A stretch of DNA of 64,000 bases from Lytechinus pictus (GCF_037042905.1 NC_087257.1:13392001-13456000), one strand, 5' to 3'. Numbered from the stretch's first letter, positions 21,945 to 57,969 are shown. Numbers and translations are program-made. The notes: generated by a model from the letters alone, not told the origin.

Positions 21945-22007
21945 CCTTCTTGCTGGTTCCTTCACCACCAGACTTGTGCTCATCGGTGGGTGCCCCACCA
22001 ACACCTC
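21945..22007 (-). CDS. Probable SET-YR exon 6 (GVGGAPTDEHKSGGEGTSKK)
   Basis: tattcag|...|gttagt boundaries; 63 nt; phase 1/1, compatible with exon 5. Confidence 0.55.
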
Positions 22008-22244
22008 CTGAATAATTCAAATATAATATAATATGCTGTGTAACAACTTGTGCCAGTATATTAAAAAAAAAACCAGAGTTAATCTGAGTATATACTGCAA
22101 TCATACAGATATAGTAGGGGAAATAAAGAATCAATTTTAAAATAAAAATTCAATCCTTAATTGGAACTCCACAGATAATCATATAAGCATATGTTGCACA
22201 TTGTGAGAGAATTTTCAACCTAGAAATATAGATATCTTAATGTA

Positions 22245-23587
22245 AACAAGTCAAAGCAAAGCGTAGCATTCCCTCGCAAGGTACAAATATGGCCTATAAG
22301 TTAGCTTCATTAGACTATATACTATTATATTACTATATAGGCAAGGAAGTTATATATATAACCACATTTTCACATATAATTAGGTGTTTTTGCATATTCA
22401 ATGAGCCATGACCTTTCACCTTTGACCTACATACTCAGAAATCAAACTTAGGCTGTATTTTGATACCATGTACCTTCATATTAAATTTCATTAAAATTCG
22501 TCAAACATTACTAAGGTTATCGAATGGAAACCAGATTCGCATACCGGTATTTAATGAGCATCAAGAAATAAGTGAGATTTATTCATGATATTTTGTTTGA
22601 TTAAAAACCATCTTAATAGGCTTTTCCCATGAAGTTGGCGGCATCGAAGATCAGCATGAAAGACAGCAAAGCATCTGGGGAGCGTTTCATCAATATTTTC
22701 ATCTGACAAGTTGTCAGATCTGACATCTTTCTCTGATGTTGATTGGCTGAGAGGTACTGTTACTATGGTAACTGTCGGATAAAATGGGACTTGTCGGATA
22801 AAACGTCCGACAAGTCCTTTCATGAAACGCCCCCCTGGAAAACCACATTTTCACATATCTAATTAGGTATTTTCGCATATGTAATGAGCTATGACCTTTC
22901 ACCTACATGTACATACTCGAACTTAGGCTGTGTTTTGATACCATATACCTTCATATAAAATTTGATTAAAATCCGTCAAACATTATTGAAGTTATATCGA
23001 TCGGAAACCAGATACGCATATTTAATGAGCTATGACCTTTGACCTACATACTCTTAAATCAAACTTGGGCTGTATTTTGATACCATATGTACCTGCATAT
23101 CAAATTTTATTAAAATCCGTCAAACATTACTAAAGTTATGTTTATAAATAATTGAAATTTCTCCCAGGATGCGTTACGTACATAAAAAATTACTAAAGTT
23201 ATTGAACGGAAACCAGATTTGCATATTTAATTAGCTATGATCTTTGTCCTACTGTACATACTCCGAAATCGAACTTAATTATTAGGCTGTGTTTTGATAC
23301 CATGTACTTTAATTCATATCAAATTTCTTTAAAATCTGTCAAACATTACTACAGTTATAATTATCGAACGAAAACCAGATTCACATATTTAATTAGCTAT
23401 AATCTTTGACCTACATACTCAGAAATTGAACTTACGCTGTGTTTTGACCATGTACCTTCATATCAAATTTCATTAAAATCCTTCAAACATTACTAAATTT
23501 ATCGATCGGAAACCAGATTTGTTACGGTAGAACGGACGGCAGCGTTACTAATATCCCCTCCGACTTCATTGGCGAGGGGATATCAAA
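22245..23587. mobile_element. Helentron/DINE-1-like non-autonomous element with an internal ~155-bp tandem array
   Basis: Starts AACAAG; subterminal ATTCCCTCGC; ~5-6 copies of the GCATATTTAATGAGCTATGACCTTTGACCTACATACTC... unit; ends in hairpin ATATCCCCTCCG...GGCGAGGGGATAT followed by A-rich sequence. Confidence 0.7.
22678..22834. mobile_element. PIF/Harbinger-like MITE
   Basis: TIR GGGAGCGTTTCAT / ATGAAACGCCCCC; 3-bp CTG duplication. Confidence 0.65.
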
Positions 23588-23749
23588 CAATTTTATACAA
23601 TATTTTGAGTAAAAAAAAAAAAGTGCTCACTACATTTTTACCATTTCATTCATTATTTGAAAGTTGAATGTTCTGCCTTTTGACATGCAACAGAGTTACG
23701 CATTAATGCAAACAACAACAATAATGCAAACTAGAATATAGGAACTTAC

Positions 23750-26344
23750 CATCAATCTTGCTCAAAGATGCTCCCACTTTTACGACCTCCATCAGAGCAA
23801 GTGGAGCTTGATACGTATTTCTATTCATTTCCTCACTATGACCCATGTGTGAGTAGAAGTACTTCCTCTCAGAGGGTTCCACATCCATTGCTGCATAAAG
23901 TGTGCTTATTCTGTGCCTGTTATGTGTTGCCGTAATGAGAGTAGGCCGCTTCAGGTCAGGAGCTTTTTTGACCACACGATGCACAGCGCGTGCCACCCCG
24001 AAACATGTGAAATTGAACCTTGAGTAGATAAAAAGATGTACTTGTTTCCTTCCAAAATGCCTGCACTTTCACGTACTTCATCATGATCAACTAGATGGAG
24101 AGCTTTATCACAGTCTTCTGGTATCAAGACTGGGACTAATTTCCGTAGACCTTTTCCGGTCTGATACGTAACTTTGTAGTTTCCAAGAGACTTCTTCTCT
24201 GCTGGATTTAGATGTTGGAGTGCTTGTTGATTAATCCAGGTTCCTTCTTTTGCTTCTTTCCACTGATTCCTTGTTAATCTACAGGGTTCACCACCCCTTC
24301 TTGCGTTAAAAAGTGTCAGTCTACTTGCAACTAGGTCACGCAATTCTACATAGTGATCACCTTCATGAACACCATATGTTTCTTTTTCCACTAGCTCTTT
24401 CATTGTGGAGAGGGTGTATTCCCGGACGCTTTGAAGATCTTCTAGAGGGAGCGTTTCTGGCTTTCAAAGTTTCTCAGTACGGGCCTTGCCTACTGCATAG
24501 GTCGCATCACCAAACACAAGGTCATGGTTAAGAATCAGAACCTCATCAAATTTATCCAAGGCATGAGCTGCATCATCATCTTCATTTCCTAGAAATGTGC
24601 CCTTCATGATCTTACACGACCGCTTGATGAGGTAGTATAGTGCAGACTTTAATCCGTACTTCAGGTTCTCTCCTTCCCGACAGTATTCGTTCACGGCAAC
24701 CTTCAGATGTTCAAAATTCCTGCGATTGAACATGTCAAGTGAATAGCCATAGGATTCCAAATAGGAACCCAGTTCATTCTCGGTATCCTTGAAATGGATA
24801 TACAAACTACCCAATCTCCTCATTGAAGTCATTACGCTCTTCTTTACTTCTTCTCTTTTGTCCACTTTTGTTCTCTCCTTCTCCCACAGTTTTCGACCAA
24901 TTATCAGTATCATTTGATCTCTCCTACACAAATAACCTACATCATCGTTTCTGAACAGACACAGAATGTTTATTGTGAAGCTCTCATCGGTTGTGTGTTG
25001 AAAGTCCATGTGCATTAATGTATTGACAGGGATATTTATTGTTGTTCCACACGACTCCTTTGCACATGTTTTTCTATGTCTGCTCAAGAATCGTGAGTTA
25101 TAGAAGCCTTTGCACAGTCCGCACATAATGAGATTGCATTCTTTTTTTGATTTTTTTCTCTTGCTGGAAACATGGATGAGGTTCCCCTAAAATTTCCTTG
25201 TTGTGTTTCAGGATCCCATTCTTCTTGAATTGCGCAAAGATCTCATCACGCTCTTTCTTTGGTAATTCTAGAGCCTTTCTTACATCTTCCCTATCTTTGT
25301 GTCGTAGAGTAATGTGTCGCGATAACTTTGTGTGGGAAATATCACATAAAGGACAATAACGTCTTGTATTATTACTGTTGCCATTCCCTGTCACTTCCTT
25401 TTTTATGGTTTCATTTTGCAATTTCCTTTTTCTTTTAGTGTCGCTGTGATGATCAGTATAGCTCTCCTGTTCATTCTGGCTATCCTCTGACATATGTTCC
25501 GATGAGTGCTCCGACTTATCCTCCGATAGGTGTTCTGACGAGTGCTCTGACTTATCCTCTGAGATGTATTCCGATGTGTCCTTCGGCATGTGCTCCGATT
25601 CGTGCTCTGACATATCCTCTGATAGGTGTTCTGACGAGTGCTCTGACTTATCCTCTGAGATGTATTCCGACGTCTCCTTCGGCATGTGCTCCGATTCTTG
25701 CTCAGACATATCCTCTGATAGGTGTTCTGACGAGTGCTCTGACTTATCCTCTGAGATGTATTCCGACGTCTCCTTCGGCATGTGCTCCGATTCGTGCTCT
25801 GACATATCCTCCGATAGGTGTTCTGACGAGTGCTCTGACTTATCCTCTGAGATGTATTCCGACGTCTCCTTCGGCATGTGCTCCGATTTGTGCTCTGACA
25901 TATCCTCCGATAGGTGTTCTGACGAGTGCTCTGACTTATCCTCTGAGATGTATTCCGGCGTCTCCTTCGGCATGTGTTCCGATTTGTGGTCTGACATATC
26001 CTCCGATAGGTGTTCTGACGAGTGCTCTGACTTATCCTCTGAGATGTATTCCGACAGCTCCTTCGGCATGTGCTCCGATTTGTGCTCTGACATATCCTCC
26101 GATAGGTGTTCTGACGAGTGCTCTGACTTATCCTCTGAGATGTATTCCGTCTCCTTCGGCATGTGCTCCGATTCGTGCTCTGACATATCCTCCGATAGGT
26201 GTTCTGACGAGTGCTCTGACTTATCCTCTGATGAGATGTATTCTGACGTCTCCTTCGGCATGTGCTCCGATTTGTGCTCTGACATACCCGCTGACATGTA
26301 TTCTACTGACACAACTCCAACACCATTCTTTGAGCTGGCATGCC
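23750..26344 (-). pseudogene. SET-YR exon 5: acidic repeats, C2H2/C2HC zinc-finger-like motifs, helical region and tyrosine-recombinase-like catalytic domain
   Basis: cattgcag|...|gtaagt boundaries. ORFs 25098..26312, 24464..25126, 23951..24403 and 23703..23996 are joined by a frameshift (~25150), a TGA at 24464-24466 (EKL*KPETLP) and a 2-bp insertion (~23988). Confidence 0.85.
25480..26290 (-). repeat. Coding 96-bp tandem repeat (~8 copies; SEHKSEHMPKETSEYISEDKSEHSSEHLSEDM)
   Basis: Period 96 seen (e.g. 25591 vs 25687); built from 12-bp SEx-x subunits. Confidence 0.92.
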
Positions 26345-27908
26345 CTGCAATGATTGCAAAAGTTTAGTTCAAGGTCAAATATCAAAACTTTACAATTGTT
26401 TCTCATAGTCCTTTTGCCAAAACCTCAATCTCATTTTTGCAATAATGGAATGAATACAGATATACTCCCGCTATAACGAGCATGGCTACGTGATATTGAC
26501 TTGAAGAGGGGATTTTCCCAGTCTCAATTTCAAACATGCATGCGTGTCTATATATGTTTTCAGTATAACAATTAAGATTTCATTAATATAAGTGGCTTAA
26601 TTGGTCCCGAGCACCTCACAGGAGTGGACATGTGTATGGTAAAATAGCAAGCCCAAGCTTCGTTCACATCAGTGAAAACAAAGAGAAATTACCGTGAATC
26701 ACCTTATAGCGGTGACAATGAACTGCACAATATGGTTGTTTTCCCCATTGAGGTGTCATATGAAAAGGCAGAAAACAAACTATCAGGTCAGCATATTAGT
26801 GGGGGACCTATATAGCTATAAATAGGCTTGGAGTACATGCAAATCTGGCTAAAATTTTGATTTTTGGCACACAAACGGTTATAGCCATTACTGATCAATA
26901 AAAGTGATGGAAGCACTTTTCTAAACCCAATCTAAGGCGGCCATCTTGGATTTCAAAATGGCCGCCATACAAAACGTATTTTCCTCAATATTGGACATTA
27001 AACGAGCTAGAGTTAATTTCAACAGCAAACCCCCATTATCGGAATCAAAAAATCATATGAACAAAGATTAAAAAAGGTCTTATATGCAGAGATGCCAACC
27101 TCTTGACACAACTCCAACACCATTCTTTGAGCTGGCATGCCCTGCAATGATTGCAAAAGTTTAGTTCAAGGTCAAATATCAAAACTTTACAATTGTTTCT
27201 CATAGTCCTTTTGCCAAAACCTCAATCTCATTTTTGCAATAATGGAATGAATACAGATATACTCCCGCTATAACGAGCATGGCTACGTGATATTGACTTG
27301 AAGAGGGGATTTTCCCAGTCTCAATTTCAAACATGCATGCGTGTCTATATATGTTTTCAGTATAACAATTAAGATTTCATTAATATAAGTGGCTTAATTG
27401 GTCCCGAGCACCTCACAGGAGTGGACATGTGTATGGTAAAATAGCAAGCCCAAGCTTCGTTCACATCGGTGAAAACAAAGAGAAATTACCGTGAATCTCC
27501 TTATAGCGGTGACAATGAACTGCACAATATGGTTGTTTTCCCCATTGAGGTGTCATATGAAAAGGCAGAAAACAAACTATCAGGTCAGCATATTAGTGGG
27601 GGACCTATATAGCTATAAATAGGCTTGGAGTACATGCAAATCTGGCTAAAATTTTGATTTTTGGCACACAAACGGTTATAGCCATTACTGATCAATAAAA
27701 GTGATGGAAGCACTTTTCTAAACCCAATCTAAGGCGGCCATCTTGGATTTCAAAATGGCCGCCATACAAAACGTATTTTCCTCAATATTGGACATTAAAC
27801 GAGCTAGAGTTAATTTCAACAGCAAACCCCCATTATCGGAATCAAAATATCATATGAACAAAGATTAAAAAAGGTCTTATATGCAGAGATGCCAACCTCT
27901 TGACACAA
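26307..27908 (+). repeat. 797-bp tandem duplication (26307-27103, 27104-27900) with TGACACAA junction microhomology
   Basis: Copies differ at about 3 positions; TGACACAA occurs at 26307, 27104 and 27901. Confidence 0.92.
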
Positions 27909-28703: not shown

Positions 28704-31700
28704 CTATTCCCATGCGTGAACATAATGCCACGCAGACCAGAACTTGTCTAACTTTGTCTTGAAGCCATTGATTGTTGATGCTGTGACTACCTCAGTAGGC
28801 AAAGAGTTCCAGTCATTAACCACTCTAACACTGAAGGTGTTTTGTCTCACTGCCAGTCTACTCCTTTTCAAAAATAGCTTGTAAGGGTGGCCACGCGTTG
28901 CTTGAGTGGTAGCTGATGTGAAGAATAGGTCTCTATTCACATCATCAATGCCATAAATTATTTTATAGGTTTGTATCATGTCTCCTCTGCGCAGTCTGTA
29001 CTTGATGGAGGGTAATTTCATTTCACGCAGTCTTCTGCCATAGTCCATTTCTTTCAGGGCTGGTACTAGCTTGGTCGCTCGTCGCTGGACTTTCTCAATA
29101 GCCTTCAAGTCAGAAGCATATCTTGGGTACCATATTCCATTCGCATATTCAAGAATTGGTCTCACGAGTGACTTGTACAACCTTTTGATGTTTTCTTTGT
29201 CTCTATGCAAGAAAGTGCGTCGAATCATAGCAAGCACACGATTAGCTTTCAAGACTGCGTTGGCTACTTGGGAATGGAATTTCAGTTGAGAGTCCATAAT
29301 GACTCCCAAGTCTTTTTCCTCTGAAACTTCCTCCAGCACATCTCCATCTAGATGATACTGATGATGGGTATTCTGTTGACCTAGATGGAGGGATCTGCAC
29401 TTTGTTGTATTAAACTGGAGCTGCCACTTCTTGGACCACTCAGCTAAGTTGTCTAAGTCAGCTTGTAGCCTGTCATAGTCATCTTCCATTCTGATCTCTC
29501 TGAAGAGTTTGGTGTCGTCAGCGTATATCTTTACGATACTGCTTACTACTTCAGGGAGATCGTTGATGAATACCACAAAAACTGTCGGTCCGAGGACACT
29601 ACCCTGAGGCACTCCACTTCTAACAGGTAACCACTGTGAAGTTTTTCCATTCACGACGACTCTCTGCCTCCGATGGGTCAAGAAGCTGTAAAGCCATTTC
29701 CCCAGACTACCTGTTATACCATAGGATCTGAGTTTGTTCATCAGTCGTTCATGGGGCACAGAATCGAAAGCTTTACAGAAATCAAAGTAGATGGTATCAA
29801 CTTCACATCCTTCATCAAGAGAGGCAGTCCACAATTCCATGACTTCAAGCAGTTGTGTGACACAAGACCTTCCTGGTAGATCCGTGTTGTGCATCACACA
29901 ATAAGTCATTCTGAATAAGTTGATTGAGAATGGCATCACGCACAACAGATTCCATGATCTTTCCGATAACTGAAGTCAGGCTTATTGGTCTGTAGTTTTC
30001 AACAGCATCCTTCTTTCCTTTCTTATGTATTGGTGTGATATTTGCATCTTTCCATGACTGCGGGAGATTACCTTCTTTCAAGGACTTTCTGAAGATAAGT
30101 GCAAGAGGTGTGCAAATTGTTCCAGCAGTTTATTTTAGAACTCTCGGGTGAAATCCATCAGGTCCAGCTGATTTTGAACTTTTCAGCAATTTCAGTTTGT
30201 TCTTTACATTACTTGTGGTAATGTCCAGATCAGTTAGGAGATTACCCTTATGTCTATCTTCCAAAGTTGGAATCTGCTGCACATTTTCATCTGTAAATAC
30301 ACTGTTGAAGAAGAGGTTAAAGAGTTCTGCTTTGTCCTCGTCATTCTCAGCAGTGGTTCCATGTTTATTTTTCATGACCCCAAAATTAGCTCTGCATCTT
30401 CTTGAGCTATTTGCATATCTCCAGAAGGCTTTGGGGTTAGACTTGATATTGTTTGCAATGTCCTTTTCAAACTTCCTGCGAAGATTCCTCGTCATTTTAC
30501 GAAGTTTGATGGCCTCTTTTCTTGATCGCTGATAGTCGACATCATCTCCACTGTCACGAAATCTTTTCCAAGATCTCTGTTTCTTCTTGTGTTGTCTGAT
30601 AGCTTCCTTTGTCATCCAGAGTTTCTTCTTTTTTAGCCTAACCCCTGTGGTTTTAGGGATGTGTTGGTCTATTGTTGCTTGATAGATGGTTGAGAAGAAG
30701 TTCCATGACTCATCTACATTCATAGATTCCAGTTCACTACACCAATCTATGTCAATGATGGCATCATTCATTGCCTGGTAGTCGCCTTTATGGTATCGAT
30801 ACCTTTCTTCTTTTCTCAATGTTTGTTCGGCATACAATTTCACATGAATAAGGATACATTGATGATCGCTTAGACCCAGGCCAGGTAAGTAAGAGATATT
30901 TCCAATCATTCCTTCCTCATTAGTGATCAATAGGTCCAGTATATGTGGTTGTTGTCCTGTCCGGTATCGTGTGCACTCATCTATATATGCTGATGGAGGA
31001 AACAGTCACTCAAGCAGTCGATAAACTTCTGTTCATGTGAATGATGGGATGTCCAGTTCTCCCAGTTGATGTTTGGGTAATTAAAGTCACCAACGATGAT
31101 AAGGTGCGAAGGATTGCTATCTGCAACTTTACACAGCATCTCAGTCATCATATCAGTAGTTGACATATATATGTTTGGAGTTGGACTACGGTAAATGCAT
31201 CCCAGAGTTAATGAGTCCATTCCCTTCAGCTTCATATTTATCCACACACAATCGTTGAAGTTTGACTCAAAAAATATTTCCTTGACTAAAGTAGCATAAC
31301 GTTTGTGCACATACACCAAGACTCCTCTTACATCTTCTTTGTCAATGTTTAAAAACTGGACATAGTCTTCAAGCTGATAATTTTGCACAGTCAGCTTGAT
31401 ATCACAATTTTTGGGCAGGCATTCACAGATGACAATAATATCAATAGTTCGTTGTTCCAGCAGCAGGGAAAGTTCATCCAGTTTGTTGAGTAGGCAGTCA
31501 CTATTGGTATACAAAATTTTCAATTGTCCAATATTGGAGTCGGCACCTGCTTTCCTGTGCGTCTCGCCAAACTCTCCTTCGCTTACTGTGTCATCATCAG
31601 TCAAACGCCTCTCATCAGATTCTTCTTCTGTTTCTGTTTCGGTATCATCTGAGTTAGTTTCTCCTGTTTCTGAATTATCATCATTTTCTTCATCTTCTGT

Positions 31701-33104
31701 ATCTGCTTCTTCAGAGTTAAATTCCTCACCCTCTATATCAGTATTATCTGAGTCAATTTCTCCTATTACTGAATTTCCAATATCAGAGTCAATATCTCCA
31801 ATTTCTGCATGAATTGAGACAATTTCCTCAATATCTCTGTCTGCATCGTAGTCATTTACCTCCGTAGGATCTGAGTCTATTTCTCTAATTTCTGTGTTTG
31901 GAATGTCAAAGTCACGGTCTCCAGTTTCCGCAGTGTTTGCATCAATTTCTCTATCATAAGTATCAACAAGTACATCAAGTATTGTACGTGCATCAATTGA
32001 GAGAATTTCTCCCATGTCTGTGTCAGAGTCCTTATCTCCATTTGAGTCAGATTCTTTAGTGTTTCTTTTTGCATTAGATTCCTCTATATCTTTCTCCACT
32101 TCTGCATCAGATTTGTCCATTTCTTTCTCCATTTCTGAATCAGGTCTCTCTATTTCTGCATCACTTTTGTCGATTTCTTTCTCTATTTCTGTATCAGATT
32201 TATCTATTTCTTTCTCAATTTCTGTAGGAGACTCCTCTATTTCTGTCTCTATTTTTGCATCAAATTTGGCTATTTCTTTCTCAATTTCTGTATCAGTTAT
32301 GTATTTTTCTTTCTCAATTACTGGATCAGACTCCTTGATTTCTTCCTCTATTTCTGCATCAAATTGCTCTATTTCTTTCTCTATTTTGGCCTTGGATTTG
32401 TCCATTTTATTCTCAAATTCTGCATTGGACTTGTCTATTTCTTTCTCCATTTCAATGTCAGATTCCTCTATTTCTTCCTTCATTTCTACCTTAATAGATT
32501 CCTCTATTTCTTTCTCCACTTCTGCATCTGGTTCTTCTATTTCATTATCCATTTCTGCATCGGATTTGTCCACATATACTCCTTTCTCCATTTCTGTATT
32601 AACAGACTCCTCTATTTCTGCCTTCGATTCCTCTAATTCTTTCTCCATTATGGAATTGAATAGGTTTATTTCTGTCTCCATTTCTGCATCCGATTCCTCT
32701 ATTACTTCCTCCATTTCAGCATTGGATTTGTCTATTTCATCCTTAATTTCTACTTTGGATTTGTCTAGTCGTTTCTCCATTTCTGTAACAGACTCCTCTA
32801 TTTCTGTCTCCATTTCTGCCTTCGATTCCTCAATTTCTTTCTCCATTTCTCCATTGAATTTGATCATTTCTGAATCAGATACCTCAATTTCTTTCTCCAT
32901 TTCGGCATTGGATTTGTCTATTTCTTTCTCTATTTCTGCACCAGACTCCTCTGTTTCTACCTTAGATTCTTCTATTTCTTTCTCTGGTTCTGCATGTGAT
33001 TTGTCTATTTCTTTCTCCATTTCTGCATCAGATTCTTCTATTTCATCTAAATGTACTTGAGCAGATACTTTTAAAAGAAATGTCTGGTTTGTTCTTGATT
33101 CCAA
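28704..33104 (-). pseudogene. LINE ORF2 (acidic N-terminal extension, endonuclease, reverse transcriptase), interrupted
   Basis: YTNSD, CIYRSP, GDFN, SDH, GPDG, YRPISLTS, DFCKAFD, GVPQGSVLGP, YADD. Frameshifts near 30983 and 29880; stop at 30130-30132. Confidence 0.92.
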
Positions 33105-38739: not shown

Positions 38740-38829
38740 TGGTAGGGTATATAGGAGCCCCCCGCATACATATTCATACATTATGTGTGTGATTGGAGGC
38801 CTAGCTGTGGCGTTTGTATAACAAAAGTA

Positions 38830-44212: not shown

Positions 44213-44264
44213 CTTTCAATTTGTCTTGCTCTTGTTCGCCATCTACTTGTACTTTTGGGGTGTC
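44213..44264 (-). CDS. SET-YR exon 4 (DTPKVQVDGEQEQDKLK)
   Basis: cttcctctag|...|gtatgt boundaries; 52 nt; phase 0 in and phase 1 out bridges exon 3 and exon 5. Confidence 0.65.
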
Positions 44265-45511: not shown

Positions 45512-45613
45512 TACAACGTACAGAAGTCATCATGTATGTGTATTGAAAAGTTACACATTTTTTTCAGTATTAGCATATATATACAAGTATTTTTAAGGCA
45601 CATATTTCATTAG

Positions 45614-45733
45614 CAGTGTTGTGGTCTCGAGGTCCAGGTCTCGGCCAATACAGATCTGTCCCGGCCAGAAGAGAGTCAGCCTCAGACCATAAAGATCTCG
45701 GCCTAGGAAGATGTGGCCTCAACTACAACACTG
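45614..45733. mobile_element. hAT-like MITE
   Basis: CAGTGTTGT ... ACAACACTG; 8-bp flanks TTCATTAG / TTCATTAT. Confidence 0.7.
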
Positions 45734-46229: not shown

Positions 46230-46494
46230 TGTATGTTTCTGTAAGTCTTCTTGCATTCTTCCGATTAGTTGAGAATAATATGGTGTATTCCAATTGTGTC
46301 CCTGTGGAAGCCCATAGTCATATAAGATTTCAGACTTGGCTGGAATGTCTTTCATAGCATACAGGCAGAGAACAGGTTTTCCGTCTACCGTTTTAGCTGT
46401 CATTTTGCTGTTTTGTTCCTTTCCTTTGCTATGATTGACAAGTCTTCCAAGTTGGCACTTGGACTTGGGATCAGGCTCATCTGTAGCATCGACA
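46230..46494 (-). CDS. SET-YR exon 3, SET catalytic core (CVDAT...LGRLVNHS...EILYDYG)
   Basis: tttcag|...|gtaagt boundaries; ORF 46215..46505; canonical SET NHS and YDYG motifs. Confidence 0.9.
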
Positions 46495-47275
46495 CTGAAA
46501 TGCAATACAAAAACAAAATTTAAAAAACATAGTGGAAGTCAAATGAAGGTAATTTTAGGGAGTTGTTAGAGTAATACAGACAACACGTATTCAGCTAGAG
46601 TTAGACCACAAGAAATAGCCAGCTGATTGGGAAAAAGTCTGCTTCTCTACCATTACCACAGAAAGGCGACTCTGGAGAGCAACCACAATACATCCATTTT
46701 GATGAAAGTGCACTCGGAATTCTTTATCACTCAAGTCAATTGTTTATTTTACCATTGAACAGCATGAAATATATTATGTAATAGCACTTCCTCAGGCAAT
46801 GTGTCTTGCCTGGTATAGCGCCATCTACTGCTGTGCACACTTGATACACACTCAGAAGTCACCATGCCCACCCACTTTTTTTACTGGAGGGGCATGGCCC
46901 CCTACTATATTGGTCAGTGAATTTTTGTTTTGTCGGAACATTTCATATTGTGAAGACAAAATATTTTATGTACCAACGAAAGTATACAAAGAAATGACTT
47001 AAAATGTGAAAGTACTAACAAATTCAAATCTCGCTCGCTCCGTTAGCTCGCTCGCATTCAATCTTGTATTAGGGTGTCTGAACGATTTTTCAATTTTCCC
47101 TTTTGGATCGTTTTTCACCATTTTGGTTGGATAATTGAAAAAATTATTTACTCAGAATAATACATTTCAAATTTCAAGACTCTTCGATGTTTCTATCAAA
47201 AGTTACAGCCCCTTCAATTCCCTACAATATTCATCCATTTTTTGTAAGAATCGACGAAAAAGACGTATACCGTAA

Positions 47276-47862
47276 GGGCACTAGTATTCAACCCGTTTGG
47301 AGAGTTTCCTCAAATATATAGAAATATAGAATTTACCTGAATTTCAGACCCGTCTTATTTTCAAGAGCAAATGCTGGTTATTCTTTTTCTTCAACCAGTT
47401 GACTGTGTGCGCGGGTGATCGAATTATACGGCTACGGATTTTGGTACTAGTATTCAACCCGTCGGCACTAGTATTCAACCTAGCGATGAAAGATGGCCCT
47501 GTCTCTCAATCTGCCCTTGTCCCATCCGACTATGGACTAGACCATTTGAGATGAGACCAAACAGGGAATTAATCAAATCCAGAGACTTACATAGATCTAG
47601 ATCTAATTTAGCAATCTAAACCCTTTTGAGATTTGCTATCAATCCTCACTAGGTTGAATACTAATGCCATTCAGTGCAAAAGGCCATCGCCGCATAATTC
47701 GATCCTCCGCGCATACAGTCGACAGATTGACAACGAAAATACCGACAACAGATTACCCTGGAAATAACAAAGGTATGAAATTAAGATAAATTCCCTATTT
47801 CTAAATATTTTGGGGAATATGTCAAAATCTTTGAATTATGCCGGGTTGAATACTAGTACCCT
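47276..47862. mobile_element. Palindromic MITE
   Basis: GGGCACTAGTATTCAACCCG ... CGGGTTGAATACTAGTACCC, with internal copies of the motif; exact ends and TSD unresolved. Confidence 0.65.
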
Positions 47863-48750
47863 ACTTAGCTGATCCGAAAAATGTGGGGAAGGGTATTTTC
47901 AAACTGTAATTGTTTGTGATCCCTGGGGGCTAGCGAAAAAATAAGCGTAGGGATATTTTCCTTACGACTGGGACTACATATCGCCAGGGGCGTCATATCT
48001 CATAAGTGGCAAATTTCGGAGTAAGCCAGGAAACAATGTTTAAATAGCTGTTTTGACCAAGATATTTTTAGAATTTCGAGATGACGCCCCTCTGGAAATA
48101 TTGGAATTAATCTGCTCTTTCATATGACACCTCATTTATTGAGTATCACCTTCAGGATCACAAAGAATAAAGGTTTGAACTTCAAAAAAAAAAAAACTTT
48201 GACCAATTTTGCATGATCGCGTAATGCACATAGACTGCATAGGGCTGTGTGCAATCTCTATGGGAAGGATTTTAGCACACAACATCGGGTGCGCGATCAG
48301 ACACCCTACTTGCGCAAACAAGATAAATTACTATTTCTGCACCAATACTGCACAGAATTTATACAACATTTAATCACCCCATTAAACCCGTTCGGGAATG
48401 ATCTAAACTGCGAGTTTTATAGTCAGGTTTTTGAAGAAAAATACTGTGGGAGGGGGGGGGGGGGCACTCACTCATGTATAATGTCAGACGGGTATGTGCC
48501 ACTTATACAACTGTGGGAGGGTTGTAAGCGGGAGTGGGAGGGAGGACAATCCCCTCCCACACGCTCCCTCGCAATATCTGGCAACCTTCCATTTTCCATT
48601 AATATTACCTCATGACTGGCCCACCCACATTCAAAATTGTTCCACCGCCACTGTAACCGCCTGCCCGACCACACTCTGATTCCTATAGAGCCCCTTCAAC
48701 GTTTGTTTGGCGGGTATAATATTATAATAAGCAGAAACTTTATTACTTAC

Positions 48751-48922
48751 CAAAGTGCGATTCTTTTATTTGTCATGGGGTTTATCCACTTGAAGAAATA
48801 GCGGAATCCAGTCTGTTCCATTGCCTCCCTCCCATCTCCTTCCTCTCCTGTTATAAGCTCCCCAATATAGCAAAGGAGAAATTCTCCTTTAACCCTGCCT
48901 ATTTGTGTAATGACAGCTCGGC
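48751..48922 (-). CDS. SET-YR exon 2 (RAVITQIGRVKGEFLLCYIGELIT...FRYFFKW...IAL)
   Basis: tttgcag|...|gtaagt boundaries; 172 nt; not in the ORF track; matches the SETD8-type G.F..EY.G.LI...Y.F pattern. Confidence 0.85.
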
Positions 48923-49160
48923 CTGCAAATTAAGAATATAAATTATGCAAGTAATATTACATGTACTGTATATGTTAATAGTTGGTACCATTGTACATTA
49001 ACTGGTAGTCATAATTGTTGTCCCATATGTACGAATATGTGATGTTTTGACTGCTGATTTTTTTTATACTGTTGTTGCGCATATGCCGCACCCAGACTTT
49101 TTGATATTTTCTCTTCCGAAAATACTCAGGCCTTTACGCCGGCAAATACGGTACATGTAT

Positions 49161-50498
49161 TGTCACGAATTCGTAAGTTCTGACATGTTGTTGCAATGAA
49201 CTACAAGGAAGGCGTCTGTGAACTATATGCTCCCATTTATTAGATTATGTCTAATAACATTGTAGTGTTCAGTTATTCAACAACTGTGTGAGATTCCTGT
49301 AAATAAACAATAAAGGATAAACATATCTTAGTAAAGAAAGCATTTCTGTACATGTATCATCATTCTTTCCCAAAAAATTCATTAAAGACATAAGGAATAA
49401 TCAATCATGCCCTTTAACCATTTTGCTGTCAAAGGTAGAATTTAACTGAAAGTAATAAGAGAGAATTAATGAAACTTTCCTAATTCAGTCTTAATATCAT
49501 TGTTTCCCAATTCCAACAAATCTACCCTATATGATAAGATATCATAATTATCTAGCAACAAACATCTGTGAAAATATATTTGTCTTCAAAATAACAAAAG
49601 GTATAGATTTAATCATTTAAATCTCTAAAACTGTAACAGAAAATTCCTATTGTTTTGTTTCCCTTCTAAATCAATAAAATTCACTTGAAAAACAATTATC
49701 AATATTAGTGGTGATTGAATTATTATTTCACGAATTTTGTGTAAGCAATGTAATTTTAAAGACATCAGTTCTAAGTAACAAGAATTAACTGTAAGACAAC
49801 ATTAACTATCAACAAGAATTAACTGTAAGACAACATTAACTATCAATACTACTGAAAGATAAACAATAACGTCATGAAACCCTGCTATAACACGTGTAAA
49901 CTCCGGGCGGCGGATCACACCAAAATTCCTGGAAATATCAATCTGCGAGCCAACTCGCACGTAAGTTTGTGACCATACCACACCAAATGAGTAGGAAAAA
50001 TAGTGCATAACTTAACTGGCTTGTAAATATGTTAAACAACAATAAATCCTACAAACTTGGATTTAAGAAAATACTCTAAATTCGTAGAGTCATAATCATG
50101 AGTACATCTTAAGAATTGCGTGTCACAAGACAATATTTTGAAGATATCGACCGCAGAGAACTTCCGCGTGTATTCAAGATACGCAAGGTCCTTCGTTGGA
50201 AAGTGTGATGGATTTTCAAAGTATAATCTAAACCTAAATCTCTTCAACAAGGTATTTAAAAGAGGAATACAAAGATATTAATAAACAACACATTCTCATT
50301 AAATCTACAAAAGTTTTTGAGCAAATCTCAACATACCTTGCATAGCATAAGCGTGAAAACTAAGGAAATCTTGTGATCAATCGAATGAAGCAAACTGCTG
50401 TTATTTTACGAACTCGTGTTGTTCTAACTAGTCTACGTACAAGGACACGCGCAAGCGCACAATTTAAAAATACACATATACTTCAACATGTCATGACA
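49161..50498 (-). repeat. BEL 3' LTR (1338 bp)
   Basis: Direct repeat of 56126-57458. Confidence 0.95.
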
Positions 50499-50807
50499 TC
50501 CCATCCCCCCAAAGGTGACGGAATGTCACTGAATACACATACATTGTAAACATAACAATACTGAAAATATCACTGGTGGTTGTTCATATAAAAATAAACA
50601 AAACAGTTGATAGAAGTCCAGAGTTCAAGGTTCGAAATTCAACACTTAGATTTCGATGAAAAACGTCCAAAGTTTGATGTTGATGCACTCAAGTTCGAAG
50701 TTAGATATACTAAGAGTCTGGTGAAAATATCCCAAGGTGAAAATATCTCAAGGTGAAAATTTGGCAGAGTTCGGTGTCACCCAACTACTAAAGCCTAAAA
50801 CGTTAAT

Positions 50808-53800
50808 CTATGAACGTTCAGATTCCTTCATTAGCAGAACAAGCTTTGTCACAGGTCTTTTCAGTTTTGTACCGTCCGCGAATCTCACGTCCACTACTCT
50901 GACGAGGTCATCTTTTCCTGGGTAGACACACGTGACTTCCGCCATCTTCCAGGAGCCGCGCTTCAGGTTCTCACCGATGACGAGTACGATGTCCCTCTCT
51001 CCTAAGTTCTCAGCAGATTTCTGCCACTTCTGGCGTGGTGAGAGTTTGTGGATGCACTCCATCCAACGTCGCCAAAACCCATCTACCATGAAATTGCAGA
51101 TCTCCCTACGTTTCCGGTGGTTTCCTTTGTATTCTTCACACGGGACTTCGGGGCATGGTAAGTCACCTCTACCTATCAGGAAGTGGTTTGGCGTTAGTGG
51201 AGGATGATCCGGTGACGATGATTTTGCAGTTAGGGGTCGACCATTGATCAGGCTGGATATCTGGCAGAAAACAGTCTCCCACTCGACGAAAGTCAAACGA
51301 TCAGCTATCACCAGGTGTCTCATACCTTTCTTAACTTCTTGGACCAATCGTTCAACGGCCCCCTGGTGGTGAGGTCCTCCTGGAGGTCCGAATTTCCACT
51401 GAACATTGTACCGTTGGCAATGGTCCTTCAGTACTGTCTGATTCAGTTTCAAGTTCAGTTCATTGATGGTGTTATCAGCTCCTCTGAAGGCAGTGCCATT
51501 ATCGCTGACCAGCAAGGATGGCGCCCCTCTGATGCTTATGAACCGTTCTAGTGCCTGTAGGAACGCTTGTGTAGACAGGTCTTGAACACAGGTGAGGTGC
51601 ACGGCTCTGGTCACTGCACACGTGAACACAGCACAGTAGCCCTTTGTCGTGGTATTCCGGTTCAGCTTTACATTCACTGGTCCAAGGTAATCAACCAATG
51701 TAGTCTTGAATGGGGGTGAGCAAGGAGTGACTCGGAATTCTGGCAAGTCGGCCATCTTCTGTTGAATTGGCTTGCCTCTGTGTCTCCTGCATACGACACA
51801 GTCGTACACCACGCGTTTGGATATGTTCACGTCTCCGACAATCCAGTAATGCTTCCTAACTTCTGTTGCCGTTCTCAAGTGACCCCCGTGAAGGGCATGT
51901 GCATGTCTATCTCTCACGATCAGCAGACTGATGTGGCTCTTCTTAGGGAGAAGATAAGGATGTCGCACATCATATGACAATGGAGCCCTGTCAATTCGTC
52001 CGCCAACACGGAAGACTTGGTCTTCTTCATCGAAGAATGGGTCCAGTTTCATGATGTTAGGATCCTGGAAGTCAACATCTCGCTGTGCTTGTCTTATCCA
52101 GTATAATTCAGCCTCCTTGACAAGTTTTGGAGAAGGGTACATAGAGATCTGTTTTGCGAGCTGCTTCAGCCATTGGTTCTTGGGCAGTTTTTTCACGGAG
52201 AGAACTCTAGCGGTCACCATCTTTAACCTGCACCAGCTGGAGAACTTGGTTGAGTCAACTATCGGAGAAGGCTTAGAGACGACGTTGATTCTGAGAGCCA
52301 GTGTCTTGGCATTCCGGACATGGAATTTTTTCTGTTCTTCGTCTCCAAGGCTCACAGGAACATTTTCTGGTGTCTTTGGCCAAAACGTAGGTGATTGCTT
52401 CAAGTACAGTGGTCCCTCAATGACTTGTCTCATTTCATTGGCAGTTCCTCCTCTGGAAACCAGATCGATAACATTCTGATCTGATGGTACATATGCAATG
52501 TCCTTGATGGGGTCGAACTCTGTTGTGATCTCGCCAACACGATATGCGACGTAGGACCGGAAGGACTTGGATTGACCTCTTACCCAGCTAATGGCAGTCA
52601 TGCTGTCTGTCCAGATCTTGGAATAGGCGATGTTGAGCCGCAAGGCTTTCTTCACAGTAAGCATGAGCCTCGACAACAGAAGGATCGCCTAAAGTTCCTT
52701 TCGAGGAATGCTAGACTGCTTCAGTGGAGTGAGTTTGGCTTTTGCACATACAAATGATAGATGTGCTTCAGTGTCCTCAGGGTGAGACCATCGTAGCCAA
52801 ACACCAATACCCATGGCATCTTCTGAAGCATCGCTTGCTCCGTGCAGGGACACTTCTGGTAAAGGCCTTATCCCCTTGAAAGGCTCTGGGATCAAGCACC
52901 TTGGAATCTCAATGCTAGCTACCTCCTCAAAGTCTCTATTGATGTCTCGTAGAATGGCACAAAGCTCACCCTTGTCGTTGAGAGGGGTAACCCAGTCTAG
53001 GTTTAGCTGCCATAGCTTTTGCAGGAGAATCTTCGGTCTAACGAGGAGCCCAGATAACATGCCAAACACATCGTAATACGAAGCAGTTTGGGCCAGGATA
53101 TTGCACTTGGTAGGAACAAGTAGAGTCGACTTCACCTCCTTTACCCTCAACGTGTCTTTTGAGAGGTTCCATTTAGTGCCCAGGGCAGTGGCATCTGTGC
53201 TGTCTTCTGTTTCGTCGCAGGCTTCTGTCGCATTCGATTGCCATTTTCTGATGGTGAAGTTGCCTTTCTGAAGAGTCTTGCTAAGCTTAGATTTGAGCTC
53301 TAGAGCCTCTGGGACATTAGTGCCAGATTCATTGAGGTCATCAACGTAGAACTGCCTGGCAACCACTTCCTTGAGTTTGTCGTCTTCCGGTGCATGTTCA
53401 TCTACCACATGTCTAAGGGTGACTATAGTGGCAGTTGGTGAGGGCTTGTCCCCAAAGGTGACAGTTGTCAGTTCGTAGACTTGAATTGGGTGGCTAGAAT
53501 TCTCTCGAAACACAAACCTGTGGAATCGAGCATCATCAGATTTGATTTTTATGGCTTGAAACATCTTGCTGACGTCTGCAATGATGCCCACCTCGTTCTC
53601 TCTGAACCTCAGGGCAACTTCAAAGAGATCAGAGTTGATATTCTCACCTTTCATGAGGTAGTCATTCAATGAGTGGCCCTGGAACCTGGCCTTCGCGTCA
53701 TATACCACTCTGACAGGAGTTGTCTTCGAGTCCTTGGTGACAGCGAAATGTGGCAGGAACCACATCTTTTTTCCAGTGCTTCTGTCTCGCTGTAGCTCCT

Positions 53801-56075
53801 CTTCTGAGACATGGCGCGAAACACCCCTCTTTAACTGGTCTCTCATCTGTCTACAGTAGATGTCCCAATCTTCATGCCTGTTTTTGAACTGATTCTCAAG
53901 GCTTCTCAACCTTTTGACAGCATAGTTGTAGTTGTCCGGCAGGTCATCGGGTGACTTCCTCCATGGCAGTCTGACTTCGTACGATCCATCAGAAAGCTGA
54001 GTTACGCTCCGTTGCATTGCCTCAGTTGCTTCTTTGTCCAATACATCTGAGGAGCACTTACACTTCTTGGGCTCCAGACCCACAGTCTCCAGACCTATGA
54101 ACTCTTCCAATGGTCCAATGGCTGACACATTGATGTAGTTCAGCAGTGAAGTTGAACTTGTAGACCGTCCTCCTTGAACAAACCAGCCAAAGGGGCATCT
54201 TACAGCGACAGGATCATCAAACTTTTCGCCAAGGATGTATTCTTCCCAGATCATCAAGTGTGTGTTGTCCACACCAAGGAGTCCGTCGATGGTTTCGGAT
54301 GGGGCAGCATGGATATCAATGGCGCTCAGATGCTCATACTGCCGAAGCTGTTCTGGTAGTACAATAGGAGTATCACCGCAGGGTTGATTTATCTCTGTCA
54401 TGGTTAAAGGACATGACCAATTCCCTGCAATATCTTCAATGTAGCAGTCGAACAGTCTCAATTTCCTTGTTATCTTGCTGCCACCAACAAGACTCAGATC
54501 ATGGTCCTGGAAAAGGCCTCTCTCTGTCCTTGGAAGAATCCCTTCCCTTAACAGTGTAGCTTGGCTGCCACCATCCAACAGGATGCGCACCAGGTGCCGG
54601 ACATCGCCACATCGTAGATAACCAACAACAGTAGGTAAAGTGCTTTGAAGCTTCCCTGTCTCGTTGGTGTGGGCTGTTGTCACGTTGATTGAGGTTGAAC
54701 GTGGAGATTCCATAGTGTTGCGTGTTTGGTTTGCAGGACCTTGACCACTCTCTCCGTATATGACAGGGCAGACAGCTGCGAAGTGTGAGTCACTGCCACA
54801 CGTTTGGACTCTGCATGGAGCAACAAACTGACAAGAGTTTTGGTCATGTGGAGGCTTGCCAGCAACACAGTTGTTATGCCCACATCGGTAACAGATACCA
54901 TTCTTTCTCATTACTTTATATTTCTCATTCTGTGGCAGGCTCTTGAACTTGTTGCAGGTCTTCAAGTAGTGCGAGTCTGCATTGGGGTGGATGGCACACT
55001 TGGCGACCCCGGAGTGTCTGGCCTTGCTTGGTTGGCTCTGGTTATCAGAAGTATATGAAGCAGCGCTTGTAGACTTATACACCTTATGTTGTCTTTGTGG
55101 AGGGCCAGGCGAATTGTCCCCACTGTTAGGCTTCGCCTTCTCGAGCAGCAAAAGTTGGCTGTATAACCACTTGACCAGACCGGTGAGGGAATCATCAATC
55201 CTGTCATCTCTAACACCTTTATAATATGCGATGCGGTGTTCCTCTGGGAGCTTCTGCTTAATCTGACTCAACATGATCTTACTGTTAAGCTCTCCAGATA
55301 GGCCAATGGTCTCAGCTTGGGTTTCGAAGTTTTGAAGAGTCTGGACAAAATGACCCATGGCGGGGAGGTTTGTTTTGCCTTTGATCTCGTATGTCCTCAG
55401 GTTCTCTAGATCTTTTAGTAGGCTGTCTACTACTTTGTCCTGATCGCCGTAACACTCATCAAGTACCTGCCAGGCTCGTTCAACACTAATGCACCCTTTG
55501 ATTTTGTCGCGTTCTTTGACATTAATCATTGATTCGGTCAGTTGATGGAAGCATTCCATCTCTGTTAACTCTGTTGCACAGTGGGTGAACAATTCTTTGA
55601 AACGCTTGTAGTCTCGAAGGTTCCCATTGAAAGTTGGGAATCTCATTCTTGCCATTCTTGGAGCAGCCGACGTAGCGGTGTGGGGCATAGGAGATGGCGC
55701 ATATGAAGCTGGACTGGATCTTGGATGTGGAATTGTAGGTGAAGAGGGGAGAAACTGTTGATTGTCCAGGGGAGATTGAGACTGACGGTCGACGACCCTC
55801 CTTCCCCGTATTAACACCTGGACGTACTCATTTTCACATTCTCCCATCCATTTCTCCTCCACCTCATACTCTCTCTGATCTTCGATGATATCCATCAGCG
55901 CCGAATGTTTCTCTTCCACTTTCTCAAATTGTTGCTCAGCTTTAGTGATGTATTTCTTTAACATGTCTAGATCACCAACGGCATCTGTTGTAAGGCTGTC
56001 AATTGTCGATAATGTTTGCGTCAACTGACCCTTGATGTTTCGTCTTGATAGCTTCAACTTGTTGACGTCAGCCAT
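50808..56075 (-). pseudogene. BEL/Pao gag-pol polyprotein with one in-frame stop
   Basis: FPTFNG; CYRCG..; LLDGGSQ; LPHFAV..KTTPVRVVYDA; YVDD; SDASEDA; SIPRKEL*A (TAG at 52689-52691, same frame continues); SDNGT; LTPNHFLIG; RPVTKL. Confidence 0.93.
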
Positions 56076-56125
56076 GATGTAAGTTGAAGCAGGTTGATAT
56101 ACACTATTATAATAGTTGTTGAAGA

Positions 56126-57458
56126 TGTCACGAATTCGTAAGTTCTGACACGTTGTTGCAATGAACTACAAGGAAGGCGTCTGTGAACTATATGCTCCCA
56201 TTTATTAGATTATGTCTAATAACATTGTAGAGTTCAGTTATTCAACAACTGATTCCTGTAAATAAACAATAAAGGATAAACATATCTTAGTAAAGAAAGC
56301 ATTTCTGTACATGTATCATCATTCTTTCCCAAAAAATTCATTAAAGACATAAGGAATAATCAATCATGCCCTTTAACCATTTTGCTGTCAAAGGTAGAAT
56401 TTAATTGAAAGTAATAAGAGAGAATTAATGAAACTTTCCTAATTCAGTCTTAATATCATTGTTTCCCAATTCCAACAAATCTACCCTATATGATAAGATA
56501 TCATAATTATCTAGCAACAAACATCTGTGAAAATATATTTGTCTTCAAAATAACAAAAGGTATAGATTTAATCATTTAAATCTCTAAAACTGTAACAGAA
56601 AATTCCTATTGTTTTGTTTCCCTTCTGAATCAATAAAATTCACTTGAAAAACAATTATCAATATTAGTGGTGATTGAATTATTATTTCACGAATTTTGTG
56701 TAAGCAATGTAATTTTAAAGACATCACTTCTAAGTAACAAGAATTAACTGTAAGACAACATTAACTATCAACAAGAATTAACTGTAAGACAACATTAACT
56801 ATCAATACTACTGAAAGATAAACAATAACGTCATGAAACCCTGCTATAACACGTGTAAACTCCGGGCGGCGGATCACACCGAAATTCCTGGAAATATCAA
56901 TCCGCGAGCCAACTCGCACGTAAGTTTGTGGCCATACCACACCAAATGAGTAGGAAAAATAGTGCATAACTAAACTGGCTTGTAAATATGTTAAACAACA
57001 ATAAATCCTACAAACTTGGATTTAAGAAAATACTCTAAATTCGTAGAGTCATAATCATGAGTACATCTTAAGAATTGCGTGTCACAAGACAATATTTTGA
57101 AGATATCGACCGCAGAGAACTTCCGCGTGTATTCAAGATACGCAAGGTCCTTCGTTGGAAAGTGTGATGGATTTTCAAAGTATAATCTAAACCTAAATCT
57201 CTTCAACAAGGTATTTAAAAGAGGAATACAAAGATATTAATAAACTACACATTCTCATTAAATCTACAAAAGTTTTTGAGCAAATCTCAACATACCTTGC
57301 ATAGCATAAAGCGTGAAAACTATGGAAATCTTGTGATCAATCGAATGAAGCAAACTGCTGTGATTTTACGAACTCGTGTTGTTCTAACTAGTCTACGTAC
57401 AAGGACACGCGCAAGCGCACAATTTAAAAATACACATATACTTCAACATGTCATGACA
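56126..57458 (-). repeat. BEL 5' LTR (1333 bp)
   Basis: Direct repeat of 49161-50498. Confidence 0.95.
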
Positions 57459-57479
57459 TGTATACTATTCTTCCTGAGG

Positions 57480-57720
57480 GCCTAGCTGCAATCATATCAT
57501 ACCCCAGCTGTAGCCAAGCTACAATGATAAGGCGCTCCAAGCATTCAAGGAATTTTTTCCTACCGGGAACCCACTTATTACTGCACCTGGGTGGAGAGTG
57601 AGAAATGTAGATTAATTCCTCGCCAAAGGGCATACATGTAAGTGCTGCAGCGGGAATTAAACCTTGAACCATGTGAGACATAGTCCATGAATCTTTGGGC
57701 CAGAAGTACCTCGTGAAAAG
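57480..57720 (-). mobile_element. Degenerate tRNA-derived SINE
   Basis: Minus strand shows a B-box-like GGTTTAATTCCC, a CTCTCCACCCAGGTG...GGGTTCCCGG core-like segment and an AATTCCTTGAATGCTTG motif. Confidence 0.55.
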
Positions 57721-57844
57721 ATATACACTGCATGATATGAACAGGGCAATGGGAAGTATACATGTATGCACACTATACACACAATGATGGATACCACACA
57801 AAAGGATGCAAATAAAATCGAAGTTTCAATACAGAATAGTATAC

Positions 57845-57969
57845 CTTTTTTAGGCAGGATTATTATTTCAAATCCTTCCTTGTCCCGCTCGCGAAATTAC
57901 TTTTCCCACTGAGTTCTGGACCAACATATGAATATTCATGACTTGCGTCTTCGGATTAAGAGTACGCAT
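57845..57969 (-). CDS. Probable exon 1 of the SET-YR gene (MRTLNPKTQ.../...ERDKEGFEIIILPKKG), frameshifted
   Basis: Ends AAAAAAG|gtat; G+GC gives KKGRAVIT, the SET N-terminal strand. An in-frame TAA lies just upstream of FRERDK, so the start codon is uncertain. Confidence 0.6.

Follow-up and report, generated by a model that had tools for sequence, protein, structure and literature searches.

Does a single gene join a histone-methyltransferase-type SET domain to a tyrosine recombinase (YR) in the genome of Lytechinus pictus, and, if it does, is that gene a mobile element, a host gene or the remains of one of them? The question is raised by the window analysed here, a stretch of 64,000 nucleotides (nt) (GCF_037042905.1 NC_087257.1:13392001-13456000), in which an initial annotation, made from the sequence alone, had drawn a spliced gene of six exons over 36 kb and had proposed that it encodes the recombinase of a YR-type mobile element, or a domesticated derivative of one. 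Our results make it probable that the locus is a transcribed, spliced and decayed member of a multi-copy metazoan family, the SET-YR family, which is mostly maintained by its hosts and has an ancient, Crypton-like origin.

Gene structure and the SET half

All gene pieces of the window lie on the minus strand, to which the coordinates of the gene given below refer. The list of open reading frames (ORFs) places one SET half at 46215-46505 and four successive pieces between 26312 and 23703, which code for an acidic repeat, a pair of zinc-finger motifs, a helical stretch and a segment that contains YR motifs (LFNARRGGE, TGKG, HVSGWH, ATHNRHR, HMGHS..YQ); a second SET piece, GRAVITQ...KRIAL, was found at 48929-48750 by three-frame translation. 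Sequence and frame analysis, together with homology to the N termini of the family, define exon 1 (57845..58013) as an N-terminal leader that runs up to ...EGFEIIILPKKG and ends at the donor AAG/GTATAC after 57845. Its 'SRRSPR...QW...DKEGFE' segment is homologous to family N termini, the homologous frame being M...SRRSPR...QW...DKEGFEIIILPKKG. This frame starts at the ATG at 58013; the ATG at 57969, which had been taken as the start codon, is out of frame with ...EGFEIIILPKKG.

Exon 2 (48751..48922), which was located by a transcript contig and by tblastn to family SET domains, encodes the N-terminal half of the SET domain (GRAVITQIGRVKGEFLLCYIGELI...KRIAL) and ends at the donor CTTTG/GTAAGT at 48751. 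Exon 3 (46230..46494) follows from the acceptor TTTCAG/TGTCGATGC at 46494 and encodes the C-terminal half (CVDAT, RLVNHS, EILYDYG) and a post-SET tail; it is identified by Pfam SET and by both flanking joints in the transcript contig, and its donor is ACA/GTAAGT at 46230. Exon 4 (44213..44264) is a 52-nt linker mini-exon (DTPKVQVDGEQEQDKLK) with an AG acceptor (TCTAG/GACACC at 44264), joined to exon 3 in the contig, and a GTATGT donor (AAAG/GTATGT at 44213). The large exon 5 (23703..26344; tblastn E 1e-114 to 1e-128) begins at the acceptor TTGCAG/GGCATG at 26344, in phase with exon 4, and encodes the acidic repeat, zinc fingers 1 and 2, a helical core-binding-like domain and the YR catalytic domain, in a broken frame. 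Joining exons 2-5 gives a single open frame across the junctions and rebuilds the codons at KKG/RAV and IAL-C/VDAT, just as had been anticipated. The spliced translation reads GRAVITQ...KRIAL-C-VDATDEP...GRLVNHS...EILYDYG...QKHT-DTPKVQVDGEQEQDKLK-GHASSKNG..., then eight acidic repeats of 32 amino acids (aa), then RRYCPLCDISHTKLSRHITLRHKD. The repeats correspond to a tandem array at 25491..26286, with 8.3 copies of a 96-nt unit that encodes a 32-aa acidic SEH/SED repeat (Tandem Repeats Finder, period 96, 94% matches), and RRYCPLCDISHTKLSRHITLRHKD is zinc finger 1 (25290..25361), a C2H2-like motif that is conserved in the paralogs and has a weak Pfam match to CCHC_ZFPM2 (E 0.0019). The six-exon chain of the initial annotation thus stands in part: the exon 2-5 junctions have canonical GT-AG sites and one open frame, and the sixth exon, drawn down to 21945, has no homology to the C-terminal domain of the family.

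The SET exons 2-4 of the window locus are transcribed and correctly spliced. The transcript contigs of data set X1 and the raw RNA runs X20, X21 and X23 were mapped on 43400-49300, and X1 behaves as RNA because its depth is zero in the unique intron bins. One X1 contig, with a length of 790 nt and a depth of 10.9, maps to 48751-48924 and 46229-46494 and contains the joints 46494->48751 and 44263->46229, which appear as CT..AC on the plus strand and therefore as GT..AG on the strand of the gene. The RNA that had been sought across 46230/44264 is thus present in this contig, which then runs along exon 4 for 52 nt, exactly the span of 44264-44213. A further 137 nt past exon 4 fall outside the mapped stretch, and 158 nt ahead of exon 2 are unplaced. 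X1 contains 63% of the sampled words of exon 5. A protein search for an ORF spanning the junction (window 25101-26342, residues 1-45) returned no match. Upstream of exon 5, a perfect 300-nt direct duplicate of 26307-26606 (27104..27403, 100% identity, spacing 797) carries a second copy of the exon-5 acceptor and of the first 38 nt of exon 5; the copy may have arisen by recent duplication, may serve as an alternative acceptor or may be an artefact of the assembly.

Sequence comparison identifies the SET domain as one of predicted KMT5A type, as the initial annotation had suggested in calling it PR-Set7/SETD8-like. The half-domain of exon 3 scores 35.4 bits against Pfam SET (cut-off 22.4), where full domains of the family reach 52-66 bits, and its best match in the PDB is KMT5A/SETD8 (E 7.7e-8), with ASH1L at 8e-4. 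For P0019, a family member of S. purpuratus, the top 14 PDB matches are all KMT5A/SETD8 (E 3.5e-24 to 6e-23), and the next named human family, KMT2A, follows at 3e-9, about 15 orders of magnitude weaker. The spliced translation of the window contains the cofactor and catalytic motifs of KMT5A, NHS and ELxYDYG, as well as the CVDAT strand; many paralogs have N-D in place of N-H (WINDD in C8, GRYANDA in P0003). In canonical KMT5A the SET domain is C-terminal, whereas it is N-terminal in all fused family models that we checked.

The recombinase-like half and the fused family

The recombinase half was examined as a module of about 490 aa, in an alignment of 43 homologs and in an AlphaFold2 model of the module from paralog C8. 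The alignment has invariant or near-invariant positions at R306/R307-G-G-E310, K355, T428..R431-H432, H454-G-H457 and Y466. The C8 model (predicted local distance difference test score [pLDDT] 85, predicted template modelling score [pTM] 0.75) contains both domains expected of a YR, a helical core-binding domain and a catalytic domain, and its top Foldseek matches in the PDB are XerH, Tn1549 Int, IntI, XerA, Cre and poxvirus topoisomerase IB. In the model, K355 lies in the turn of a predicted beta-hairpin, R431 opens a helix, and H457 and Y466 are nine residues apart, a His-Tyr spacing that is also that of XerD. When the catalytic residues are mapped by motif order and spacing, R306/R307, K355, R431, H457 and Y466 are invariant or at least 90% conserved, and the His II site is occupied by a conserved threonine, T428. 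The YR superfamily tolerates variation at His II, with Lys in type IB topoisomerases and Tyr in telomere resolvases. The C-terminal region of the family is thus predicted, by modelling, to adopt a full Cre/Xer/IntI-like YR fold, which bears out for paralog C8 the fold that had been expected from AlphaFold and Foldseek.

Three-frame translation indicates that the window copy retains all of the YR catalytic motifs (23740..24330): LFNARRGGEPCRL (Arg I), YQTGKG (hairpin Lys), HVSGWH, ITATHNRHR (Thr-x-x-Arg II), HMGHS (His III) and NTYQ (Tyr). YR recognition was decided by fold comparison alone, because the methods that use only sequence failed. PF00589 (Phage_integrase) had no match in the window pieces or the C8 module and matched 5 of the 43 members weakly (best E 1.3e-4), and a profile search of the PDB with the module found no YR. 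None of the family loci is among the 78 PF00589 matches of the genome. These other Phage_integrase loci, at least 78 genome-wide and many with intact frames of about 330 aa, are probably of DIRS, Ngaro or Crypton type and are distinct from the SET-YR family.

The genome was searched with the two SET exons and with a profile of the module. About 25 module loci were found, most of them with stops, and at no fewer than 10 loci the SET exons lie 3-24 kb upstream of the module on the same strand. The loci with this order are C13 (the window), C3, C16, C9, C2, C10 (two), C1 (two) and C21; at C20 the order of SET and module is apparently reversed. The paralogs share the exon 1/2/3 layout and have two terminal exons in addition, and at C9, a compact copy, about 400 nt separate the end of the SET exon from the large exon. 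Three L. pictus RefSeq proteins are 98-99.8% identical to three different loci of the genome. PF00856 is present in 15 of 120 database homologs; the metagenomic homologs are single-exon calls and could not reveal a fusion. Among the 15 are fused RefSeq models of S. purpuratus, the crinoid Anneissia, the sea cucumber Apostichopus, Hydractinia, Clytia, Hydra and Mytilus, and the SET domain lies at residues ~40-160, or after a kinase, in each of the seven fused models checked. The same order of domains that the initial annotation had asked about in this genome and in related species is therefore recurrent. Two Hydra vulgaris proteins, P0078 and P0074, have an added N-terminal protein kinase, which gives the order Pkinase, SET, zinc fingers and YR.

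These data support the SET domain and the YR-like region as a single predicted gene architecture. The order in intact members is an N-terminal KMT5A/SETD8-type SET domain, a paralog-specific low-complexity repeat, two zinc fingers, a two-domain YR (R...K...T-x-x-R...H...Y) and, usually, a small three-helix tail that would bind DNA.

Decay of the window copy and its surroundings

In intact paralogs, a single ORF of 1062-1575 aa without introns covers the repeats, the YR domain and all that lies between them, while tblastn of family proteins against exon 5 of the window needs three segments. A frameshift between zinc fingers 1 and 2 lies inside two A7 runs (25136..25150, with tblastn segments ending at 25152 and starting at 25135) and could be either a true slippage or an assembly indel. 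Further on, the tblastn alignment shows an in-frame TGA (24464..24466), which gives 'EKL-stop-KPE' against 'EKLRRPS' at the site of a nearly invariant arginine of the family (L-R-K-P; R251 in the alignment of 43 homologs); the codon would be consistent with a CGA>TGA change at a CpG. A second frameshift, recognised by a change of frame between tblastn segments, lies between HVSGWHAL and ITATHNRHR beside an A6 run (near 23960..23984, with the segments breaking between 23984 and 23936). In exon 1, the homologous frame from the ATG at 58013 contains an in-frame TGA at 57938-57936 and a TAA at 57899-57897.

The window copy also appears to have lost its C-terminal end. The family ends in a tail of about 70 aa, RKYTxW...LPG...FL...R.K.MNER, which is encoded by two terminal exons in the paralogs (e.g., P0003:1460-1531; loci C16 and C9: L014/L025 and L017/L027). 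An AlphaFold2 model of this domain (pLDDT 83) is a three-helix bundle with weak homeodomain-like fold matches (E 0.3-3, root mean square deviation about 2 Å), and a Pfam search of the tail gave no match. In the window, neither tblastn with family tails nor a tail hidden Markov model run against six-frame fragments of the whole window gave a hit below E 0.2 for the tail domain. Just upstream of exon 1, at 58640-58753 on the minus strand, a faint tail-like remnant that contains a stop ('RRLLPGKT-stop-ISRFLG', E 0.02) may be the relic of a neighbouring copy.

The only close fragment in the databases searched, P0121 on contig L032 of a related species, is 88% identical to the window and matches 24088-24473 only, short of the exon 4/5 junction; the L032 protein loses its frame at a different point of the same domain than the window copy does. 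Because of the nonsense codon, the two frameshifts, the two exon-1 stops and the absence of detectable tail exons, we conclude that the window copy is a transcribed pseudogene, without its terminal DNA-binding exons, that no longer yields a full-length protein.

The gene is stretched over 36 kb because two mobile elements lie between its pieces. Intron 1 contains a BEL/Pao-type long terminal repeat (LTR) retrotransposon (49161..57459, minus strand) with gag-pol ORFs at 50808-52676 and 52689-56075 (622 and 1128 aa), whose LTRs, at 49161-50499 and 56126-57459, are about 1.34 kb long and 98.6% identical in the LTR alignment. A putative long interspersed nuclear element (LINE) lies in intron 4 (28704..33104, minus strand), with endonuclease and reverse transcriptase (RT) ORFs, as judged from RT motifs in their translations. 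Intron 4 contains two more ORFs upstream of the LINE, up to 34928 (minus strand): first one of 707 aa that includes an acidic, periodic stretch of great length, and then one of 347 aa. Downstream of the gene, at 15028-18989 (minus strand), there are Gypsy-like ORFs, one of 780 aa with gag, protease and RT and one of 445 aa with integrase. A dispersed repeat of about 280 nt at 45076-45465 (also at 37135-37299 and 37955-38077) is very abundant in RNA, with a depth of several hundred in X23 and a summed contig depth above 100,000 in X1; it had no Rfam match.

Host gene, transposon and known relatives

On the question of host genes or transposons, several observations speak against recent mobility. 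The paralogs in the genome are 43-65% identical, and the only copies that reach 98-99% (C3, C16 and C9) lie inside a segmental duplication of more than 45 kb, with similarity that extends far beyond the gene. This duplication (C3:57907000-57956999, C16:11885000-11934999 and C9:8844000-8873999) is 98.6-99.2% identical and carries an intact SET-YR gene on C3 and C16 and a shortened copy with stops on C9. We considered these three as transposed copies and rejected the idea, as they resemble one another over more than 45 kb. A search for termini, which was not exhaustive, yielded no shared termini, target-site duplications or circle junctions, and thus no sign of the recently dispersed copies that would be expected of Cryptons.

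One syntenic pair allows selection to be estimated. The C8 locus (C8:19462000-19492200) and its closest foreign locus, contig L038 (GCA_040938485.1, protein P0001), keep the same order of sequence from a non-coding patch on the 5' side, across the exons and for at least 8 kb beyond them; nucleotide identity is 83-89%, and the SET exon of L038 (22511-22717) is intact, though skipped by the L038 gene model. In the module, synonymous divergence (dS) is 0.40 and nonsynonymous divergence (dN) is 0.047, so that dN/dS is 0.12, as against 0.52 in the variable repeat region. The YR module of this ortholog pair, which represents another paralog than the window copy, is under purifying selection, and since orthologous transposon insertions should drift neutrally, this points to maintenance at the level of the host. 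L038 is labelled Diadema antillarum, a label that is hard to reconcile with a dS of 0.40 and alignable flanks. The conflict concerns the species label or the distance, not the gene alone, because the flanks are syntenic too; for the same reason we rejected, as unproven, horizontal transfer as an explanation for a 'Diadema antillarum' protein that is 90% identical to C8. The argument for selection stands despite this conflict, because it needs only synteny, and synteny was found.

Our preference is therefore for a Crypton-like element as the ancient source of the family, which would later have been domesticated, or semi-domesticated, and have gone through birth-and-death turnover. A transposon past fits with the stops at most loci, the 915 clusters, the patchy distribution and cross-class identities of 61-69%, which are as high as those between sea-urchin genera. 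Of the two options offered by the initial annotation, the domesticated derivative is thus preferred, given the dN/dS of 0.12, and the mobile element is the weaker one, given that the paralogs are merely 43-65% identical. Most likely, a Crypton-like YR element captured, or was captured by, a KMT5A duplicate before the cnidarian/bilaterian split, and the family would now be kept mainly as host genes with rapid birth and death.

Several observations weigh against this reading and speak for one alternative or another. The SET and YR-like regions could be two adjacent genes, with the fusion an artefact of gene prediction or of read-through. Mapping ended short of exon 5, so that the exon 4->exon 5 joint of the window (44213->26344) was not directly seen; intron 4 is 18 kb long and holds a LINE, and the X1 contig could run on into the duplicated acceptor at about 27141 or elsewhere. 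Depth on exons 2-4 is zero in X20, X21 and X23, which we take to mean low or stage-specific expression and not absence. Some RefSeq models of module genes lack a SET domain (P0001, and in Lytechinus P0017 and P0002, for the C2 and C9/C16 copies), so not every member is demonstrably fused. Even so, we give two separate genes hardly any credence: order and strand recur at no fewer than 10 loci and also among the models of three phyla, the X1 contig departs from SET exon 3 at a GT donor that precedes the ORF stop and continues through exon 4 and 137 nt beyond, the frame is open into exon 5, and the C9 SET exon lies only about 400 nt from the large exon. On the side of the recombinase, the threonine at the catalytic His II position and the lack of any Pfam YR model above cut-off on the family count against a YR assignment. 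The window gene might, on the other hand, be intact in the animal and its lesions be assembly errors or strain polymorphisms, given that both frameshifts lie in A6-A7 runs, where assembly errors are possible, that the exon-1 stops hinge on the choice of the homologous frame, and that the locus is transcribed and correctly spliced with all catalytic motifs present. This is highly unlikely, as three of the lesions, the TGA at 24466-24464 and the pair of stops in exon 1, are substitutions and not homopolymer indels, the terminal tail-domain exons are undetectable in the window, the related-species contig at 88% identity is frame-broken elsewhere in the same domain, and the introns have taken up an LTR element and a LINE.

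A further alternative is that the window locus is a dead copy of an active, intron-containing Crypton-type transposon, whose recombinase carries its own SET domain and which spreads by YR excision and integration. The YR catalytic residues, including the Tyr nucleophile, are kept across phyla, and many of the module loci have stops and the distribution is patchy, as a transposon family would show: hydrozoans carry the family, and Nematostella is reported to have a single KMT5A (PMC10368294). At 50% identity the family falls into 915 clusters, drawn from animal genomes and marine metagenomes, it is switched on at genome activation together with transposons (PMC10368294), and the nearest language-model clusters include fungal DUF3435 YRs with a score of 0.88, which is a lead only. 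We nonetheless regard an active transposon as unlikely, since near-identical copies occur only within the segmental duplication, the syntenic C8/L038 pair does not evolve neutrally, and the genes are spread over 10-36 kb with large introns.

If the locus is, as we prefer, a decayed member of a largely host-maintained family, its intact relatives would be DNA-targeted chromatin writers. Their zinc fingers, together with the YR clamp, would recognise particular DNA sequences. Cleavage and rejoining of that DNA may still take place, given that the nucleophilic tyrosine and both arginines are conserved, and nearby chromatin would receive methyl groups from the SET domain, on H4K20 or a different lysine. 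A bolder version, in which intact members are catalytically active site-specific recombinases coupled to an H4K20-type methyltransferase, is in our view doubtful; they would then form either a 'SET-Crypton' class of chromatin-writing YR transposons or a host system that links a programmed exchange or cleavage of DNA strands to the local marking of histones in early embryogenesis.

The SET-YR genes are already known, and annotated as uncharacterised, and what appears to be new is the identity of their C-terminal half. The initial annotation had allowed that similar proteins might already exist under SETD8-like labels, and the family has indeed been published as expanded 'KMT5A-like' genes (PMC10368294), of which there are 65 in Hydractinia, 24 in Hydra and 61 in S. 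purpuratus, most with an N-terminal SET domain, while Nematostella has a single KMT5A. These genes are zygotically activated, and their C-terminal ends are conserved between cnidarian and sea-urchin members (PMC10368294). The 'KMT5A/SETD8-like' genes of that study share with the window gene an N-terminal KMT5A-like SET domain, long genes and dozens of divergent copies per genome, and they are the same family; the S. purpuratus and Hydractinia models are direct matches of our module. That study treats them as predicted H4K20 methyltransferases with an unidentified C-terminal part, and the words 'recombinase' and 'integrase' are absent from its text, whereas in our analysis the C-terminal part is predicted to consist of zinc fingers and a two-domain YR fold. 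A full-text search of the literature found no paper tying KMT5A/SETD8/PR-Set7 or the SET domain to tyrosine recombinases or Cryptons. The published puzzle of dozens of KMT5A-like genes active at zygotic genome activation in Hydractinia and the sea urchin may thus be recast, in that these genes would be DNA-targeted, possibly DNA-cutting, methyltransferases of transposon ancestry. The value of the finding lies in the family, of which the window copy is a decayed example only.

Among known recombinases, the bacterial and phage YRs (XerC/D/H, IntI, Cre and Tn1549 Int) share about 12-15% identity with the family module. The module differs from them in having Thr at His II and an insertion between Arg I and Lys, and the family adds zinc fingers, a SET domain and a three-helix tail within a multi-exon eukaryotic gene. 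Cryptons have given rise to the domesticated DUF3504 derivatives ZMYM2-4, QRICH1, KIAA1958, KCTD1 and WOC, in which most of the catalytic tetrad, R-H-R-Y, is lost (PMC3212892). Like SET-YR genes, Cryptons and DUF3504 genes are eukaryotic and YR-only, some have introns, they occur in sea urchins, cnidarians and molluscs, and they have been domesticated repeatedly, with fusions that include zinc fingers. Unlike DUF3504, the SET-YR family retains R, R and Y as well as Lys and His III, and Crypton termini are undefined in it. PF12012 (DUF3504) is not among the families listed for the 43 members, and the structural neighbours shown are Xer, IntI and Cre, with no ZMYM or QRICH1 among them. The wording 'SET domain' does not occur in PMC3212892, where a SET fusion is not mentioned.

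A chromatin writer is seldom found fused to a DNA enzyme of transposon origin; the textbook example is SETMAR. The SET-YR fusion is common to hydrozoans, echinoderms and bivalves, and its recombinase keeps the nucleophile and both arginines. In the SETMAR gene of primates, a SET domain lies N-terminal to a domesticated mariner DDE transposase in a spliced gene maintained by the host, and its likeness to SET-YR is one of analogy only, with no homology of the fusion. SETMAR combines a DDE enzyme with a SETMAR-type SET domain in a single young primate gene, whereas the SET-YR family combines a predicted YR fold with a KMT5A-type SET domain and is ancient and multi-copy.

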